Assembly (NCBI GenBank): GCA_977016875.1
Contig: CDRNST010000226.1
Span: 930,001 to 994,000, forward strand
Source of the DNA: Pavona decussata
Lineage: Eukaryota
Reading direction: 5' to 3'
DNA length: 64,000 nt
Numbering within the stretch: the stretch's first letter is position 1; every line of letters starts with the position of its first letter. A program made the translations under genes and the position numbers. Shown here one piece after another: positions 24,148-38,300 of the stretch. Under the pieces are notes generated by a model, which saw nothing but the letters and a program-made list of their open reading frames with translations, made no database searches and had not been told where the DNA came from.

Positions 24148-27100
24148 TCAATCCTGAGGTAGAATATCCGCATGGCACATCGGACACTTGTCTTGGACAT
24201 ACAACCACTTTCTGAGGCACAGACTGTGGAAATAATGGTTGCATTTTGTTACTTTGGCACTATCCAGCTCTTCGTAACAAATGCAGCACACATCGTTCAA
24301 CCGCTCCAACTGTTCCTCTGTGGCCCACTGTAAGGAGTTGAGTCTTTTTACTGCACTGCGCCGTAATAGGAAATTGTTCCAGCCCTCCTGGGCTCTTTTG
24401 TACACATTGAAGTAAGCATGCATTGAAATAACCAAAGCACCTTTAGGAAGAAAGTGAAATCATTAGAAAATCTTTATTCTACATTGTACATCAACATGTA
24501 ATAGTGTAAATGTTGTAGGTTAAAATGAATCCAGGTTAAAATGATTTTAACCTAGGTTGATTTGTATTTTCCTTTGTTAAGGTTGGGTAATTTACATCTT
24601 AACCCTTTGACCCCTGAATTTTTTACTAAGTTTTGCTAAAAGTTGACATGGACAGAGAAAATGGCTAATAAAAGCTTAAGTTTTTATCCAAACCACACAT
24701 AACCATATATTTCTAGAAAGTAGATGAGATGAGCATTTTGAAAATGTAAACATTATGTTGTTAATTATTAACTAGTCTGGTTAGTCATTCAAAATGTCCG
24801 CCAAAAAAGAAAAAATATCACATTTGCTGTCATGGGTCCAAGTTTATTACCCTCCATACAAGCTACTGATGTTCAACTATCAGTATATCACTTGAATACT
24901 ATATAAGCTACAACAATCAGCAATCGTTTTCATTCTTGCATCACACTTCACCTGAAAACAGCTTGTCAAAAAATATAGTCGGACTGATATCGACCTCAAA
25001 GGCATGAGTCGGTCCATGGTTGGGGCCTGAAAATCGTGGTTACTCTGTATTGTATAAAAAATCCAAACCGCTCTGATTCAGGTTTACACTGTAGAGTCTT
25101 CCCTTCATTTCTACAGCGTTGTTGCCGAGATGGTTTCCATCTCGATGTTTGTCCATCACCATTTGCACATGCATGAGATGTTGCTCGCTTGATGCTTCGA
25201 CAATATTCACATTTTCGGTCTCTTCTGGGGAAGAATAATCGACGGTTTCGTACTCGAAACTGTACTCCTATGAAACATTGCTAATGTTGGGTCTTTCCAT
25301 CACAATTCGATCGCGGATGAATTTCCTCCATGTCTGAGTAGAGGGATGCCATTTTTAAATCACCAGATGACATCTGAAAACAATGCTTCGAAAAAAATTG
25401 AAAATTTCCCCCTGAAAACTAGAGAAATCTAGCTAAAATAGACGCCATTTTGAATCACGTTGTTTCTTGCAATAGTAGAGGAGGCCTGGGGCCTAGAAAG
25501 TGCCTTTGGCCACTTTTTTTAGAGCAAAATGTACACCATATATGAAAGCGCGCCTATAGGCGTCTTCAGGGGTCAAAGGGTTAAACAAAGGAAAACACAA
25601 ATCAACCTAGGTTGAAATCATTTTAACCTGGGATTCATTTTAACCTACAATATACGCTATGTACAGTGTAATTTTTTTGCGGGGTTTAAAATTTTTCAAA
25701 TTAGTCTAATGTTATTTCCTTTGCCTTGGACATATTACCATTATATGGAAGGATGGACAATAAAAATCAAACTGGATTAAAAAAAATTAAAACTTAAACT
25801 ACAATGTAAAACAGGTCAAGTGTTGAAAATCAGCTTCAATAAAAAAATAATATTCTTACCTATGTAGTTCCACTCTCCCATCACAGTGGCCCATGCAGTA
25901 TACCCCAGAACTACCACGGCAACAAGAAACTCAAAGACTTTTGAGCCTGCATTGATGTAATAAACATAGTCATCTAAATCCGTTACTTGAGATTCGGAAT
26001 GAACATTGGAAACAAACAGTGCATAAATGATAAGAGCACCCATGACTTGAACAATCGTAACAAGATTGCTTGATATGATCACAAACAGCCATGCATCAAA
26101 GCTGAATAACTGACACAGCACAACAATCATGTAACCGGGAAGTATCAGGATCAAAGCACAAACTGCTAGAGTGCGGAGATGCTTGCTGTCAAAAACACCA
26201 GTGTATGTTGCTCCCAGTGACATGAGTGCTGGCTCAGTAAGTTCATAAGCAGACTGCAGGAACAATGAGATTGTGACAAACATAATGAGACCAATAAGCA
26301 TGAGGCGCTCTGGTTTAGGCAAGCTTGTAAGTCCAACTTGTATGGCCAATAGGAAGAACGAAATGCTGTCATTCCATGCCTCCTGATGACGATCTTCCAT
26401 GGGCCTCTCAAGATCCCCTTTGAGAAGTTTATTTATGAAGTCCAAGGTGAGATTAGCAGCTGCTCCAATAACAATACTGGCTCCCGCTAAATCTAGGAGA
26501 TTGTCAAAACATTCCACCAGACTTCCAGCAATGGCAATCAAAAAACCATGCTTCAAAAACAAGGCAAACCTGCTGACAAATTTTATCAACCACGTTACCA
26601 TCAGCACATGGCCTAAGCTGATTCTCCTCCAGTGGTATATAAAGAGGTCCAGCCAGCCAAAGGTGATTACAGTCCTGCAAGCATGTTTCACCATCCCTGG
26701 GAAATCTTGAAGGAGTTGCAAAAGTCCCAGACACGCTTTGTACATCTGAACCACTGAAGCGAACACGAGGTAAACCAAACAGACCTCCCGTAAGATTGAC
26801 GTTGCTTTCACAAAGAGTAAAGCCATAAGCTGGAAAACAATTGGAAAAACAAAAAACATTCCAACAGTCTGCTTGGTATTGACAATGGTCCACGTGCGAG
26901 GCACTATGGCTATACTGACAGCTACAAAAACTTGTCCATACAAAAGTGAGTAGCCATAAGCGCCACCCGGGTTCGATGAACTTTCAAGGCTTGTGCTCTC
27001 AGCTGAACTTTCCTTCTTGGCATCAGATGGTGAATATGCGAAAATTGCAGCAAAGGCCATCAGTAGAACAACCTGTTCAATTAACCAAATAAAAAGCTTC

Positions 27101-29115: not shown

Positions 29116-29338
29116 ATGACTTCAGTGGTGAGCAATTGGACCAAGAACGTGGAAGAATTCCGTCGTTCTCCGGAGTCCTTCCTTGCTGCAAGAAACATCA
29201 CCGCGCACAGTTTTGTTTTAGACATTCTTGAGGTAAACTAAGGACGGTGCCTACTAATACCGAAGTATTTTTGCGTGTTTTATGACTATGTGGGAAAAGA
29301 AGATCTTAGCAAGGGCTATTGGAATCCAAAAAGAAAAT

Positions 29339-29369
<31 letters not shown>

Positions 29370-32300
29370 TCCGAAAGCTCTTGCTAAGTTCTGCTTTCTC
29401 CACATAATTTTTAACCGCGCAAAAGTATCTCTGTATTAGTAGGCACCACTGATAAGAAACCCGAGTATCTCAAGATGCGCAGAACATATGCACAGTAACA
29501 AAAGTAGACACCATCCTTAACTGAGATAAAATCGGGAAATATCTCCCCACAACCTTATAAGCAGCAGGGGTATTTTGCAGAACACCCAATGCATAGAAGT
29601 CCTGTAGAAGTCCTATGTCATATGTCTGCCATGACAACAACTAAAAGTTAACCATCAGTATATACCCTAAACAGTATGGAAGTGCTCTTAGACCTAAATA
29701 ATATAATTTGTTGCTTAACCCTAAACAGTTATAGGTGGCGTAAAATGAGATGTTCGGCATTCTGCAAAATACCCCTCCGCCTTTTAAGTCAATAGTGCAC
29801 GCATTTCTCTCATACTATCCTCATAAACAAACAGTGATCAGAAAAAGAGTTTGAGTTAGAAAATGCCAACAGATGCACAAAGATAAATGTACATGGAACA
29901 CTTGCCAAATTCAATTCTTGGACCCATATTATCTGGCTATCTCAAATTCCCATCTCCTGGAACAATTTTTCCCCAACAATTTGTTCAAGATAGGAAGGGG
30001 ATTGGGGAGGGGGGTCTACTTTACATCCTTCTCACTCCCTGCATGTTGACCCCTGTGATCTGTAGATGGACAAAGTTTGATTCCAGTCTATTGAATTTGT
30101 GGCATTGCATGTTCCTGGTGCCGGCCAAAACATTTATCCCCTAGGATAAGTTTCCCTCACCAGTAACAAGAGCCAAAAGTTAGCAATTAAATTTCATAAA
30201 CGAAAAATGTACATATACAATGCTTCGTGCATTGTTAAATGCAATCTATATCTAATTATCTTTGTCAGGTTTTTTGTCATGAAAATCTCCCTGAGAATTT
30301 GAAGCTTCAGTTGTTCTTTCTGCTTCAAGAAAAGGTATGAACTGCAAAATAATTATGACTGCATGGGAATACATGTACTCACTGGCTCAGTTTCATTTTT
30401 ATGTAAATTATTATTTGTCTTTTAATAGTTAATGATAATGTTGATGATGGTCATGATAATGGTGATGACGAAGATGACGATGCCTTTGATAATAATAGAC
30501 CTTACTCACAATATGCTAATTGCCCATTACAAACCACGTGATGTTCTCAGGAGAATCGATCCTTTGTCTTTCTGGAAATAAAGAATACATGCTAGCATGA
30601 ATGTGACCAATTCTGAAAGAGACTACTCCCTAGAGACCTGTCACATGATCTGTAAATGGGGCGACAAAACAACAAAGCAAATAAAGGTCTTTTATCCAGG
30701 GAGAGCAATAGCCAAGGCAGTTTTCACTGGTATTCTTGAATAATGGATGTCTTTCAAGAGCGTGTGTTTTAAATAATTGTATTAAACTTTGCTTGGTATC
30801 TGTTTGCAGACTTCAAGTCTTTTTCTTGAATCAACAAGGTACTGATAATTTACCATACAGCCATACATGTATAATTTTTTACCTAGTATTTTCATGCATG
30901 CTTTTCTTCTTCCACCAAAAGGCATGTACCCCTAAGATGGAGGTCTTTCCACTGATCTTTATGCCAAAAAAATGCACCACCAAGCTTTGCCTGTGGTTCT
31001 CAAACTCATTAAAATTCATGAAAAGACAACAAGGGAAATTCATAAAATGAAGGAGCTTTGGAAATACAATCTTAATTACTGGTGTCATAAAATTTAGTCC
31101 ACTTTTGCTTTGAATTTATCCAAGAATTATTAATGGTTTGAGAAGTCATATCAAATGCTCGAAAGCATGTTTCATCCATTTTTCAAACATCTCAGAGTTG
31201 GTTAACAAAAACACTTAGGTGTCCGTCGTTTTTCAACCCACTTCTCAGTGTTTGGAAAATGAGTGAAACACTCTTTCTTGTGTTTGATGTATGACATCTA
31301 CAACTATGCACACTATTTTTATTAAGAGTCCACACAAAAGAAGACTCTTTGTAGATCATCTTGGATTTTCTTAGCATAATTTATTGAAAACCAGGTTTTA
31401 AATAAATAAATAATTAAAATTTAATACTTAATAAAGTGCAAAATTCATTATATGTATATGATCTAATGCGCTTTACAATAAGTTAACAAATATCCAAAAG
31501 AAACTGCAGGGAATATGATAGTTAAAACTACAAAATGGAACAAAATTATATTTAACAATAAATTAAAAAGCAATAAAAAATCTATACATATGGTACATAG
31601 TCTAAAAAGTCTTCGTACGCAATTAATAGTATGCTTGTTTAAAAATATACTTTTTCAGTTGTTTCTTAAAAATATTTACACTTGTCTACTTACAGCCCTT
31701 AAAGGCTTTCCGGAAGAGAGTTCCATAAGAATGGGGCAGCTACCGAAGAAGCTCTGTCCCCAGTGGTCTTGGCAGATCTAATTGCCGGGCGAGCTAATAA
31801 ATTACTAAAATATTTTGATCTTAAATTAGAATTACCTTTGAATGATATATTATTACTAAGATATGCTGGCGCTAGGCCATGGAGAGCTTTAAAAGTCATC
31901 AAATTTACCTTAAAAATAATTCTAAATTTAACTGGCAACCACTGGAGATTAATCATCACAGGTGTAATGTGCGAATAACGCGGTGTATTGGTCAGTAACC
32001 TGGCGGCAGCGTTTTATGCAAATTACACACCGTTTTTTTCAATATTCTTTACCTAATTTTTTGCACTGGTATATCTTGTGGTTTAGATTTGTTTTTGGTT
32101 TAAAAGTTATCTTATTTATTTTCTCTAAAATTACAGTGTAGAATGTGCAGTTGGCTCACTGAAGGAAATGTTTACTCATCCTTTAAAAAACATGCGTGAA
32201 GTTTATCAAGGCCAGGTAGGTGGCAGTTTTATTATAAATCCAACCCAAAATTATACCTCATCCCAATAATGTTAAATCTTAATATTGACTGACGATCAGT

Positions 32301-35300
32301 ATAAGCTGCAAAAATAATTACCGTTGATTGATTTTTCTAATGATTTTATTATTAGTGGGGTTGCATTGTATTTATAAAAAAAGTCTTACAACATAATTGT
32401 AAAACGCAGTTAATGGAGCGTGACACTCTTGAGCTCAGTTGTTACTGTGTCAACAGTTAGCATTACGTGATGCAAATTGGTCATGGATGTAATTTTACTC
32501 TTCTTGTACAATACCTATTCTTCTACTTTTGTAGCATGTTGCAATACCGTCTGTTACATTTACAGTAATTTCAACTAACGTTGTCGGTTCAAAGCATGAA
32601 GCTAAAAGACAAGACCGAAAGTTTACGTGGGATTTTTATGAATAAAATTAAATTCATCAAAATCAGTTATGCCTGGAGAAAACAATAGGTTGTAATTAGC
32701 AGTACAATGACCTGCACGTGCAGGGATAATTTTGGTGAAATTATTCATAAAAAATAATTCCACAAAACATTGCGGTCTTGTCTTTTAGCTTGATTTTAAT
32801 TCGACAACGTTAATTGAAATAGCTGTATATCCTTCGTTTTGTATGGCTAAAAGGTATAAATACTTCTATTCATGTCTCATTCAGCGCTATGTGAATCTCT
32901 TGTATTCGATAGTACTTTACTTGCCATTGGCTTAGTCCAAGACATATGTCTAACTATAAATGGTCTAGTAAAAGTCCGAGTATCACTCACTTGCTGTATT
33001 ACCTACTGTAAGGTCTACCTTTAGTGTTTGTCTGTTGAGATCTCTACTTAACTTTATGGTAATAGGAACTGCGACATTAATTGTAATTAAATTGTATTGT
33101 AATTTATATTAATTTTATTCAATGGTTTTGAGACAGTTTGCTTGAGGATTAAGTAGGTATGGTTGCAGAACTTAATTCCATGAAACTTAAGAACTGTGTA
33201 TAGTACCATGAGTTCATGTATTTTAGTATAATTTACTTTTGTGATTATAGTGCAGTAGTACAGTGGTTTTTTAATAAATATTTTAATTTTTAATGCAAAG
33301 TACAAACATTTACTGTATTTTGTAATAATTTAGTATAAGTTATCAACCAATACTATCAACGATTTATGAATATTAAATACAGTTAGCTGTACAGTTGTTA
33401 GTAATTATTACAATATGTGCAGTAAAATGACATATTTAAACAGTAAGTAATAAATAATTATTATGAAAATAATTTGATTTTATTTCCCTTTGTAGGCATC
33501 CAATGTCTTTGTTCAGAAAAATATTCCAAGGTAAATTAGACATCATTAAGATACAATTTCACCTGGGAGTCCGAAACCTCAGAGCCAGTTGGTGGGAGGC
33601 GAGTGCTCTCACCACTGTCCCATCCCATCATTGTAATTGTTGTGGCAAATGCGTTAAACTAAACTAAACTAATACATACGTACATAATTTATTTGATATA
33701 GCAGGTTATAATAAGGCAACTAATCAAAGCTGATGTGGACCTGCTAATTATCAAATGAAATCAGATACGATATAAGATAAAATAGATATTAAGAATTTCA
33801 CAACAATGAATAAAACCTAACTATACACATTAATAAATTGTTCAAAATGTACAGAACTGGTCCTGTAAATCCCTGCTCCCCCTTTCACCCAAATTTTGTG
33901 TTTCACTTTCCCACTGTAACTCAACCACAGTTTCTTTATTCCCTTTGTCTATAACTACACATGTTGTGTCTTAATTTCAGAGTGGAACAAACTGTCAGCG
34001 CTAGGAAGGATGTTTTGGCCAATTTGTCTGGACCGTCCTCACAAATTTTCCTCAGTCAGGTACCTACATGTACAACCAATCTTAAACTGTTTCTGTTATA
34101 GTGATATTATTTTCCTCAGAAAATGTAAAATTAATTTGATTTTTTCCATAGATTTTGGTAACAGGAACTGTCATCCTAATTTCTTCAGAAACAGTGGTAT
34201 GTCAAGCTACAAACTTATTGTAGAACAAAGGAAACTTGAGTTAAAGACTATTTAAATTGGTGTCACAGATACTAATTGTTCTCTGTTTAATTACTTAATC
34301 GTTTTAGGTAAGCTACATTTATGGAATTGCCGTAGGAATAATAGTCTTCCTTTTTTCCCTTCGTATAAGGAACTAGTTAAAAGAAAATATGAAACTGAAT
34401 GTCACATTGTGGCGAAGTTTAATAATAGGAAGATGCTAGAGGCTAAATGGAAACCCATTTTGAAATATAATTTAATAGGTACATAGGTGTGTAAGCGAAA
34501 AAAACCTGTAAAAAGTAGTGTAAGAGTTGCAGTCTAAGGAAGTATTATATAGTTGGTAGTATTAAGTAATGTCTTGTAGGTGGTATTGTAAGTAGTGTTC
34601 GTCTTGTTTTGTAAAGTAGTGTTCTTCGTGTTGCAATTTAAAAAAAAAAAAGGAAAAAAAAACTTATTATAATATTATTTAATAAAAGCTTAAGTACTGT
34701 ATTTCTTGGGTTAACTGTTTTAAGGGATTTAAAGGCAGAAGAAGAGGTGGAAATTAAAAGCACTGCATGTTGTAAAATGCTGATTTTTGCTGGAAACTAG
34801 TCTGCTTGAAAACTCAAACCCTATTTTTTGCAGATCACTCATGAATGGCTTCATTTGTAATGTTGGTGTTGGGTTTGCTTAGGGTTTTTCTGCTGATCAT
34901 TTTCAATTTCACTCTTATTTTGATGGTGGCTTCTGTTCTTTTCTGCCCTGCTCTTCTCAATTGTCATTGCACTGTTTTTGTTACTATTCAATTTTGTTTT
35001 ACAGATAGCAAATCAAGAAGTTTTTGTGGATTTTGTTGGAGTTCTTACAGATGTTATAGAAATGGTGAGTTAAGTACTGCTAATTACACATTTTGGATTT
35101 TTTCCAGTGTTGCTGAACACATGTTTGTTTGCAACCTTGATGCGCTTTGATGCACATTCCTTTGGGTTCATCTGTTTGACAATTTGCAATAATATTTATT
35201 ATTATGGTTTCCACAACACCAAGAACGTTTGCCATATAGGCACTTTATCCTTGAATTATGACTGTCAAGCTATTGAAATTTTAGTTAATGAGCTGTTGAC

Positions 35301-38300
35301 ACAGTTGGAAAAGGAAAAAAAATGAGCTGCATGTACATTGTAACCAGTAGATTTGAAGCTATAATTTAAACAGTTTTCCTGGAAAAGGTAGAGGAAAAAC
35401 TGGTGACTGAACTAATTCCTAGATCGAGAGAGGAAAACTACTCTGTTGACTAATTACTAGTTTTTTATCCATTAATTAACAAGTGTCTGTTTTGAATACA
35501 AATTAAAATACTTGCTCTCCACTAGTAACTACAAAACTAATCAAGGCTCTTTCTGTGTGCAGGTAAATAATCCCTGCAACTTGCTGGTGAGAAAGACTGC
35601 ATGTGAATGCCTTTGGGAATTAGAGATGTCATATCCGGTAAGGCAGGGGTCACACAACCATGTCTGCTTATTGCTGCTCGAGGCTAATAGATTATTGTAC
35701 TCTTGGGAAAATATTATTGCTTTTAAGTATCATTGTGTACCCAGTTTTTGAGTTTTTCATTATTTTTTTGAATTCTTAACTGTGAAAACAATGTAACTGT
35801 TATTTTTATTGCCAGTGAAAGTTGCATCAATTCATATACATGTATAAGTAACAAATTGACATTTAAGTTTTTCCGCTATGGTCTATACTCTTATAGATCA
35901 TAAAATGATGTCATAAAATGTTCAATATAATCAAGTGGAACCATGAGCTGTAGCTGGGGTTTCACTGCCAAGTTTTGAACATTTTATGGCATCATTTTAT
36001 TGTCTATAAGTCAGAGTATAGACCATAGAAAACTGCCATTGATTTTTTTTTATATTAATAATAACTAATAACTTTTTGTCATGTGCACAAATTAGTTAGC
36101 TGAATCAGTGAGATCCATATGTTAGCCTTTAGCATATAATTATGGAGGCTATCTGGGAATTAATTATAATAGTTTTTTTTATCAGTTATTGTTGTTTACA
36201 ATTTTTTTTTTCAAAGATCCCCAAAATAAAATTTGTAATTGATGTTGGTTTAACAGTTTTGTATAGGGTTCATTTTTCTCATTCATTGTAAATGTCATTA
36301 AAAGCCAATAATTGAAATGTCTTTCTTTTAAATAATTAAGGGCCTTCTCCATGCTAAGCTGGATCACCTCTATGCTAAATGTGCTGCTGAGAATAGCCCC
36401 ATCTTTCAGAGCTACATGGTAAGGACGTTGCAGCTGAAAAGAATTTCTGAAGCTAATAGTTTGGGTTGTGGGGGTTAATGAAGCTCTCACACCAAACTTG
36501 AAAATAGGCAGCTGAGGGCTGAATGAGGGCTCCATGAGATGGCTCTATGAATCAATCAGTGGCCAACCCCACAAACTCTAACTTGACCATGGCCAAACCA
36601 TGGCAGGGCTCGTGGCTGGGGTGCGGGTAGAGCAGGTTATTGGGGGGTGTTCTACCACCTTGGGGTTGGGTTTGTGGTTTCAGCTCCTAGGCTATTGGGC
36701 ATTCAACCTCCACTTGCAACATAGGTGTTAAAATATGATGGCATTGCATGTGCCTTTATCCATTGTGCAACAACACACTAAATTTAATTTGGATGCAAAA
36801 CTGTTGATTGGCCTCACCATGATTCAAAGCAGATGAGTAGGTACTATGTTTATGCACATACAGGTACAGTGTGTATGTACAGTGTACATGGTGTGACCAA
36901 TTGCAAAGTAATTTGCACGGCTTACTTCTTTCCTAAGTTTGGTGGGCATGATTTGGTTGTAGTTCACTGAACCAATAACCACCATGAGTACCAGCAAACT
37001 GTTAGTTCTAAAAACTGGCCTAGAAAAATGCTTCGGGTGACCTTGTGATAGAATACATGTGTGAGGCGCTTATTATCCTGAACCTAAAATGGCACTGATT
37101 TAATGATTTCAAATAAAATTGTTGCTTTAGGTTTTGTTTGTGACAGTCCTGCGTCATGCCATGGAATGCTTGTTACAGGAGTCTGCTGATAAGTGAGAAA
37201 TATATATTAATATTAAGATAAAATGTGTATGGTTGCATACATTTTTTTTTTACATTATGGTTTAATTTTTCTTTTCAGTTGGTTTGTTTCTTTTCAAAAC
37301 CAGTTTTGCTAATTGGTTTTTGGAAACTCAGATTCTAATTAAAAATTAAGAAAAGAGACAACAATTTAAGCTTGCTTTAGTTAATAATTATTTTAATTAA
37401 CTTTTATTGTCCTTGGAGGGCATCCTTCAGTTGACCCATTACCTTTGTCTGTGGGTCTCTTCATAACCCATGTCTGAACTTATTTGTTGTTGTTTCTGAG
37501 TGTCTATCTTTAATTTATTTTCCTTCTTTGTAACAAATAATTCACTGCTTTTCAAAATCTCTGATTCATTTGATCATTTATTCATTCACTCACTCACTCA
37601 TTTGCTCACTTGCTTACAGCTGTACATGTACTTACACAGTCTGTACTCATTCAGCCATTAATTCATCCACAGATTGTAATTACACACTGTACCTGAGGTC
37701 AGTTTTGCAGGCAGCGGTCCACTTTTTTATTTATAATGCACATGTATTTGTTTATCTATTTTAAGTTTTTGTCAATATTATGACATTTATTTTAATTGTG
37801 TGTTCTTGGTTTTGTGCATGAATACCCAATTTCATTCTTTTTTTTTTTTCCAATCATTTTATTTTTTCAATTTTCAACTGTCTCTCAGGTTGGATGACAA
37901 CTGTGTGAATAACTTACTCACAAGTCGCACAGAGCCCTTGAAGGTAGAAAAGATCTCTTGCATGGGGAGATTGTATGGCATTAAAATTTAATCTTTCATG
38001 TACTCTATGTTTCTTGTTTTGGGAGAGTCTTGTTGATTTATTTTTAGTGAGTTCAAATAGAGCTAGTCAGCAATGATTATCATAATCATGGTATCATAAT
38101 CTTATGATAAGACTACAAATTTTGTTGTTTTTATTTTTTTGTTAGCCATTGTACCTACCGAAAGAGGCCACAAAGCAATTTCTACCAGTCACCATTCAGG
38201 TGAGATGTTACTGGAATACGATCATATTATTATTATTATCTCATTCTTGCACTTAATATAAAATAATAAAAACAATTTTCTTTGCAACTGTTTTAGTCTT

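Follow-up and report, generated by a model that had tools for sequence, protein, structure and literature searches.

Evidence for a fixed tandem exon-pair duplication in the AP5B1 gene of stony corals

AP5B1, the beta subunit of the adaptor complex AP-5, is encoded in the coral Pavona decussata by a gene with two adjacent pairs of short exons in its N-terminal part. We consider it highly probable that these pairs represent a fixed tandem exon-pair duplication in which both sets are spliced serially, so that the protein carries an insert of 33-40 residues and no isoform switch is involved. The gene lies in a stretch of 64,000 nucleotides (NCBI GenBank assembly GCA_977016875.1, contig CDRNST010000226.1, positions 930,001 to 994,000 of the forward strand), which we refer to as the window and to which all coordinates below apply. 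Each pair is composed of a short and a long exon: Set A comprises exons 3a and 4a, set B comprises exons 3b and 4b.

Anatomy and splicing of the two exon pairs

Sets A and B are located on the plus strand between exon 2 (30269-30334, 66 nt, phase 0-0) and the constitutive exon 5 (34152-34196, 45 nt, phase 0-0), both of which have counterparts of the same length in Nematostella and Pocillopora. In set A, the short exon 3a (30810-30838, 29 nt, phase 0-2), for which a 29-nt counterpart likewise exists in these two genera, is followed by the long exon 4a (32137-32215, 79 nt, phase 2-0); in set B, the short exon 3b (33496-33530, 35 nt, phase 0-2) is followed by the long exon 4b (33981-34059, 79 nt, phase 2-0). 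All four exons are stop-free, preceded by a polypyrimidine tract and AG, and followed by GT. Exons 3a and 4a together comprise 108 nt and exons 3b and 4b together 114 nt, so that joint inclusion of both sets stays in frame; exons 4a and 3b are separated by an intron of 1280 nt. Further downstream follows exon 6 (35005-35064, plus strand, ~60 nt), whose start is set by an RNA joint and whose end is deduced; it is supported by tblastn and corresponds to a 60-nt exon in Pocillopora.

For the analysis of splicing, contigs of four public RNA runs (X1, X5, X8, and X9) were aligned with positions 29800-35750 of the window. Three of these runs (X5, X8, and X9), which are labelled as the window species and originate from three studies, contain spliced contigs, and the GT..AG joints 33530>33981, 34059>34152, and 34196>35005 occur in each of them. 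Contig record 26 of run X9 (2044 nt, contig depth 16.6) contains exon 4a at positions 310-388, then a block of 35 letters, and then exon 4b at positions 424-502: The joint table has a 35-letter side at exon 3b, which equals the gap between 4a and 4b in this contig. In the same run, the bin depth is 5.5 over exon 2 and 2.42 over exon 3a, corresponding to 16.6 x 66/199 and 16.6 x 29/199, respectively; moreover, the bin depth over exon 2 fits 66 nt of transcript contig in X5, X8, and X9 alike. Because contig coordinates and bin depths agree, the exons belong to a single transcript with the order 2-3a-4a-3b-4b-5-6, of which we infer the first three junctions.

The same serial arrangement is found beyond the window species. 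In six other corals, intronless contigs of 3.1-3.8 kb contain one open frame that runs across both sets. Among the isoforms seen at NCBI for six coral species (five for Acropora palmata and two each for A. millepora, A. muricata, Pocillopora verrucosa, Oculina patagonica, and Orbicella faveolata) none skips a set: The annotated variants are N-terminal truncations or have gaps elsewhere, and none of them removes 36-38 residues at the position of the sets. Likewise, none of the ~70 cluster members has a length or a gap that would fit the loss of one set. The initial annotation of the window had proposed that A and B are used as alternative or mutually exclusive isoforms. This proposal was not upheld, as the contigs carry both sets serially, no set-skipping isoform is annotated in the six coral species, and all four exons occur together in the contigs of this species and of the six other corals, which is an outcome that the initial annotation itself had named as refuting its proposal.

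Two further observations were made on the transcripts. Run X1, a coral metatranscriptome, was rejected as splicing evidence: Its contigs are unspliced, stem from a related coral that is 90-95% alike, and are uninformative in this respect. This 90-95% identity holds for introns as well as exons, the region of set B among them, and the library carries DNA or pre-mRNA; because the contigs match across the set B region, the related coral would have the same duplicated layout. Moreover, truncated N-terminal isoforms start at a methionine inside the exon equivalent to 4a (residues 81-90), as seen in P0020, P0021, P0042, P0046, and P0049, and such a truncation is common to Nematostella, Oculina, Acropora, and Pocillopora. 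Because it is annotated in Nematostella and corals alike, the truncation is older than the duplication and unrelated to it, and it probably reflects an alternative 5' end.

Homology and age of the copies

The evidence that the window alone provides for a likeness of sets A and B can be rated as moderate. If exons 4a and 4b are compared in register, their translations share 5 of 26 residues and reach a BLOSUM62 score of 18 at a shuffle mean of -20 (p ~4e-4), and their DNA is identical at 35 of 79 positions, with ~20 expected (p ~4.5e-4 from shuffles). When the two sets of the window are aligned locally without this constraint, significance is not reached (p 0.16). What decides the matter is the comparison with relatives that possess a single copy: In tblastn searches, residues 68-95 of the sea anemone protein P0009, which correspond to its single long exon, match 4a with 54% identity (E 1e-4) and 4b with 41% identity (E 0.016). 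When the copies are divided into halves and matched in register to the single-copy exon, the z-scores are 8.5 for the front and 3.1 for the back of 4a, and 6.8 for the front and 5.1 for the back of 4b. Additionally, 4a and 4b are still identical at 9 of 26 residues in Oculina and Porites. Judged by these alignments, both long exons are whole homologues of the single-copy exon, and a simple insertion into one exon is excluded because each half of each copy matches that exon in register. A repeat search found no direct repeat shared by the introns that flank set A and those that flank set B, from which we infer that the duplication is too old to be seen outside the exons.

The distribution of the sets among animals provides a frame for dating this event. 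A single set of 10+26 residues is found in the sea anemones Actinostola and Nematostella, in the sea star Patiria, in the nemertean Tubulanus, and in transcript P0023. Two sets in series are found in Acropora, Montipora, and Porites, which we take to be members of the Complexa, in Pocillopora, Oculina, and Orbicella, which we take to be members of the Robusta, and in two further corals. The exon lengths of AP5B1 reflect the same difference: They amount to 114, 66, 29, 79, 45, 63, and 75 nt in Nematostella, to 117, 66, 29, 79, 38, 82, 45, 60, and 75 nt in Pocillopora verrucosa, and to 117, 66, 29, 79, 35, 79, 45, ~60, and 75 nt in the window. In eight coral taxa set B comprises 33-40 residues without any stop (33 in Acropora and Montipora, 40 in Pocillopora), and its changes in length are always multiples of three. 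Based on this distribution, the pair appears to have been duplicated as a unit after the split of stony corals and sea anemones and before the split of Complexa and Robusta. The features of a fixed duplication are found together here: one copy at the same place in the outgroups, copies that are whole homologues, and frames that are open across species.

With regard to structure and origin, the initial annotation proved accurate. The coordinates, lengths, phases, translations, and splice borders that it gave for all four exons were confirmed on the sequence, and its statement that one set has the length of the equivalent segment of human AP5B1 agrees with the 36 residues of the single-copy relatives. 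Its suggestion of an old tandem duplication of the exon pair with both copies kept is borne out by the gene structures of the relatives and the in-register matches, as well as by tblastn, in which a single anemone exon matches both long exons.

Divergence, predicted fold, and rival explanations

The two copies have diverged unevenly. Identity to the anemone exon is 70% in the front half and 22% in the back half of 4a, and 25% in the front half and 55% in the back half of 4b. Among seven corals, the nonsynonymous divergence (dN) amounts to 0.14 in the rest of the gene, 0.24 in set A, and 0.49 in set B, which places both sets above the rest of the gene. The fastest-evolving piece is exon 3b with an NG86 omega of ~1.25, which is near neutrality. 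By these comparisons, 4a has stayed close to the ancestor in its front half and 4b in its back half, and the sequence in between is evolving fast. Apart from this, the synonymous divergence (dS) is 0.54-1.0 in the short duplicated exons, lower than the value of 1.4 for the remaining gene; splicing-signal constraint in very short exons may account for the difference, or merely noise from segments of 9-27 codons.

AlphaFold models of the N-terminal 385-420 residues, which were based on an alignment of 22 sequences, place this pattern in a structural context. In these models the coral protein P0014 stands in for the window protein with regard to the fold, the two being ~80-90% identical in these exons. 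The anemone model consists in this region of a helix (residues 68-83), a turn of 7 residues, and a second helix (residues 91-107), with predicted local distance difference test (pLDDT) values of 85-95. The coral model has a helix at residues 69-102 with falling confidence, pLDDT values of 27-49 at residues ~100-129, and a helix at residues 130-146: A low-confidence loop of ~27 residues replaces the tight hairpin turn of the anemone protein. The two original helices are likely to derive now from different copies, the first from the front of copy A and the second from the back of copy B, and the stretch between these conserved halves would form a flexible, variable surface loop. Because each copy keeps one half, a transcript that skipped set A or set B would encode a protein lacking a well-kept helix end.

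The following course of events would account for these results. An AP5B1 exon pair (29 + 79 nt, 36 codons) would have been copied in tandem in the stem lineage of stony corals and, because the duplicated unit has a length divisible by three, the two copies could be spliced serially into every detectable transcript. Complementary decay would then have set in: The front of 4a would have kept the original helix and the back of 4b the start of the next helix, and the back of 4a, exon 3b, and the front of 4b would have come under relaxed constraint and become variable in length. Direct observations within this course are the exon structure, the likeness of both copies to the single-copy exon, their serial presence in RNA, the distribution among taxa, and the differences in rate; the flexible surface loop and any function of the insert are putative.

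Homologous adjacent exons with the same phases, each set of which is in frame on its own, are what mutually exclusive exons usually arise from, and we therefore weighed the possibility that sets A and B constitute a mutually exclusive or otherwise regulated cassette, by which isoforms of AP-5 beta would differ in the N-terminal solenoid. Sets A and B share with such exons adjacency, homology, like length, and phase, and rare isoforms could go unnoticed in contigs; mature transcripts with only one member, however, were not found. The cassette is rendered quite unlikely by the contig of the window species in which 4a, 3b, and 4b follow one another, by the open frame that spans both sets in the contigs of six other corals, and by the lack of a set-skipping isoform in six annotated coral species or among the ~70 cluster members. 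Moreover, joint inclusion is in frame, so that nonsense-mediated decay does not police it, and steric exclusion is ruled out by the 1280-nt intron between the sets. A feature that would enforce exclusivity was found neither in the frame nor in intron length or borders (all GT-AG), competing RNA pairing not having been examined. Finally, if every protein contains both copies, one would expect their halves to decay in a complementary manner, as is observed, and either set alone would leave the protein without one helix end. A regulated isoform that is merely minor is given an equally small chance.

The fixed duplication also has to be weighed against an origin without any duplication, in which ~38 new residues and a new intron were inserted or exonized in an ancestral 79-nt exon and the likeness of A and B is due to chance or to the helical pattern. 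The free local alignment of the sets, which lacks significance, and the front half of 4b, which is hardly recognisable in Acropora, Montipora, and Pocillopora, agree with such an insertion, but the pattern of lengths and phases is repeated (29+79 with 35+79 here, 29+79 with 38+82 in Pocillopora), and the supposedly new halves, that is, the front of 4b (z 6.8) and the back of 4a (z 3.1), match the single-copy exon in register. Together with the identities between 4a and 4b in Oculina and Porites and the match of the anemone exon to both copies, this makes an insertion very improbable. The fast evolution of set B, with an omega near 1 in exon 3b, might further suggest that one set is a decayed pseudo-exon within an intron that is open by chance. 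However, RNA contigs contain each of the four pieces and show GT..AG joints, the pieces recur in the coding sequence of every coral examined, and set B changes its length only in multiples of three; the contigs of the window species and of other corals refute this reading, to which we assign next to no probability.

Several points weigh against a fixed duplication with strictly serial splicing or qualify parts of it. The junctions 30334>30810, 30838>32137, and 32215>33496 are deduced from contig coordinates and depth and are absent among the 15 of 42 joints listed. The RNA of the window species consists of assembled contigs that carry no counts and from which rare variants are dropped, so that minor or condition-specific skipping could escape. 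As Corallimorpharia, Zoantharia, and Antipatharia lie outside the sample, the age of the duplication is a lower bound, namely the crown of Scleractinia. Furthermore, dS is saturated in most species pairs and the segments comprise 9-27 codons, which makes the omega values rough, and the structure models rest on 22 sequences, with low pLDDT being no proof of disorder.

The AP5B1 locus and the significance of the duplication

The coding region of AP5B1 occupies positions 29116-54262 of the plus strand and comprises ~33 short exons, as delineated by colinear tblastn matches of full-length coral AP5B1 proteins and colinear single-exon Pfam matches; the ATG start codon is at 29116 and the coding end at ~54262. 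Relatives were gathered stepwise, from one middle exon to full-length AP5B1 proteins and from these to coral and sea-anemone relatives, and both single window exons and full-length relatives from databases served as queries. Exon 1 (29116-29232, plus strand, 117 nt, 39 codons including the ATG) is matched by residues 1-40 of coral P0014 with 87.5% identity in tblastn, and named AP5B1 proteins show good alignment with both exon 1 and exon 2. The Pfam set of AP5B1 consists of PF21587, PF21588, PF21589, and PF21590. PF21588, the middle domain of AP5B1, is matched by four separate window exons whose profile positions (179-233, 252-297, 295-329, and 347-367) are colinear with their order, and one of them passes the cut-off of 24.5 bits by itself (27.8 bits); a single exon scores 12.5 bits with PF21589 (AP5B1 beta-barrel), a weak value from a single-exon scan. 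PF21588 as well as PF21589 and PF21590, the latter two representing the C-terminal appendage, are present in the full-length relatives, which align colinearly to the window up to 54262. In a six-frame search of the whole genome, PF21587 (N-terminal domain) had no match in the window at E<=10, a miss of little weight because the 71-position model spans several short exons here, and gave weak matches only at two unrelated places. A Pfam scan of AP5B1 exons 1 to 4b, taken singly, and a PDB sequence search with one 49-residue AP5B1 exon yielded no match.

Upstream of AP5B1, on the opposite strand and in head-to-head orientation, lies a gene for a TRC8/RNF139-like RING E3 ligase (24148-27060, minus strand), which is recognized by a TRC8_N match (E 5.8e-66) and a RING finger exon. 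Nematostella and Pocillopora have this gene next to AP5B1 as well, and this micro-synteny predates the split of anemones and corals. Because of the Pfam matches, the exon-by-exon alignment, and the conserved TRC8-like neighbour, we assign the window gene as the AP5B1 orthologue.

The introns of AP5B1 contain several repeats and palindromes. In the intron between 4a and 3b, a stretch of 265 nt (32560-32826) carries inverted arms of 51 nt at 32596-32646 and 32744-32794, and a joint 32560>32826 skips it in contigs of all four RNA runs; the stretch has the appearance of a small palindromic mobile element that has entered one copy of a larger expressed repeat (~32380-33027). In the intron between 3b and 4b, the segment 33581-33779 has a very high contig depth of up to ~53,000 in one run, and its loose-end consensus reads like the T-arm of a tRNA, which suggests a highly repeated, transcribed element resembling a short interspersed nuclear element; peptide-level traces similar to it occur near 40650-40830, and ARAGORN found no tRNA in the 28-42 kb part of the window. 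Two further, near-perfect palindromes in AP5B1 introns, at 29246-29447 (95-nt arms with 82% complementarity and a 12-nt loop) and at 35890-36010 (53-nt arms with 79% complementarity), are probably small inverted-repeat transposons. At 40340-40587, a long false open frame is due to an intronic microsatellite-like array with a period of 8/16 nt, in which a register of 84 nt is present in 19 overlapping copies.

Compared with constitutive tandem exon duplications in general, AP5B1 conforms to the scheme in that whole phase-compatible exons are copied and spliced serially, the frame is kept, and the copies diverge. It departs from the scheme in two respects: The unit is an exon pair split by a phase-2 intron instead of a single exon, and complementary decay has left no clean extra solenoid repeat, so that the result resembles a loop insert. 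Mutually exclusive exons that arose by tandem exon duplication are surveyed in PMC8373072 and PMC5740500, and exons 7a/7b of ATE1 are an example given in PMC7797038. Such exons have the same origin and are adjacent, homologous, and of like length and phase; AP5B1 differs in that its transcripts contain both copies and that no feature of exclusivity was found. With the AP5B1 of other animals, the coral gene shares the domain order, the exon lengths (66, 29, 79, 45, 60-63, and 75 nt), and the TRC8-like neighbour, but the proteins of these animals are without the 33-40 extra residues that stony corals have between the fifth and sixth predicted helices. Literature searches found no papers on AP5B1 splicing or on AP5B1 in corals: The exon-pair duplication is visible in public coral annotations, yet we found no paper that mentions it.

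The attractive idea of an isoform switch in AP-5 is thus replaced by a fixed duplication that would go back to the last ancestor shared by all living stony corals. It adds a variable loop to the trunk of AP-5 beta and provides a clear case of complementary decay within a duplicated coding unit, in which each copy keeps the half that is needed for the fold. The effect on AP-5 biology is probably small, and the mechanism is an ordinary, well-known route of gene growth. More far-reaching consequences are conceivable but improbable: The duplication might serve as a marker for the placement of Corallimorpharia (the 'naked coral' question), AP-5 might have co-opted the fast-evolving loop as a binding or regulatory site specific to corals, or low-level skipping of set B might restore an anemone-like tight hairpin. 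Being a rare genomic change whose polarity is clear, with one pair in anemones and bilaterians and two pairs in both coral clades, the duplication is a usable phylogenetic marker within Hexacorallia.

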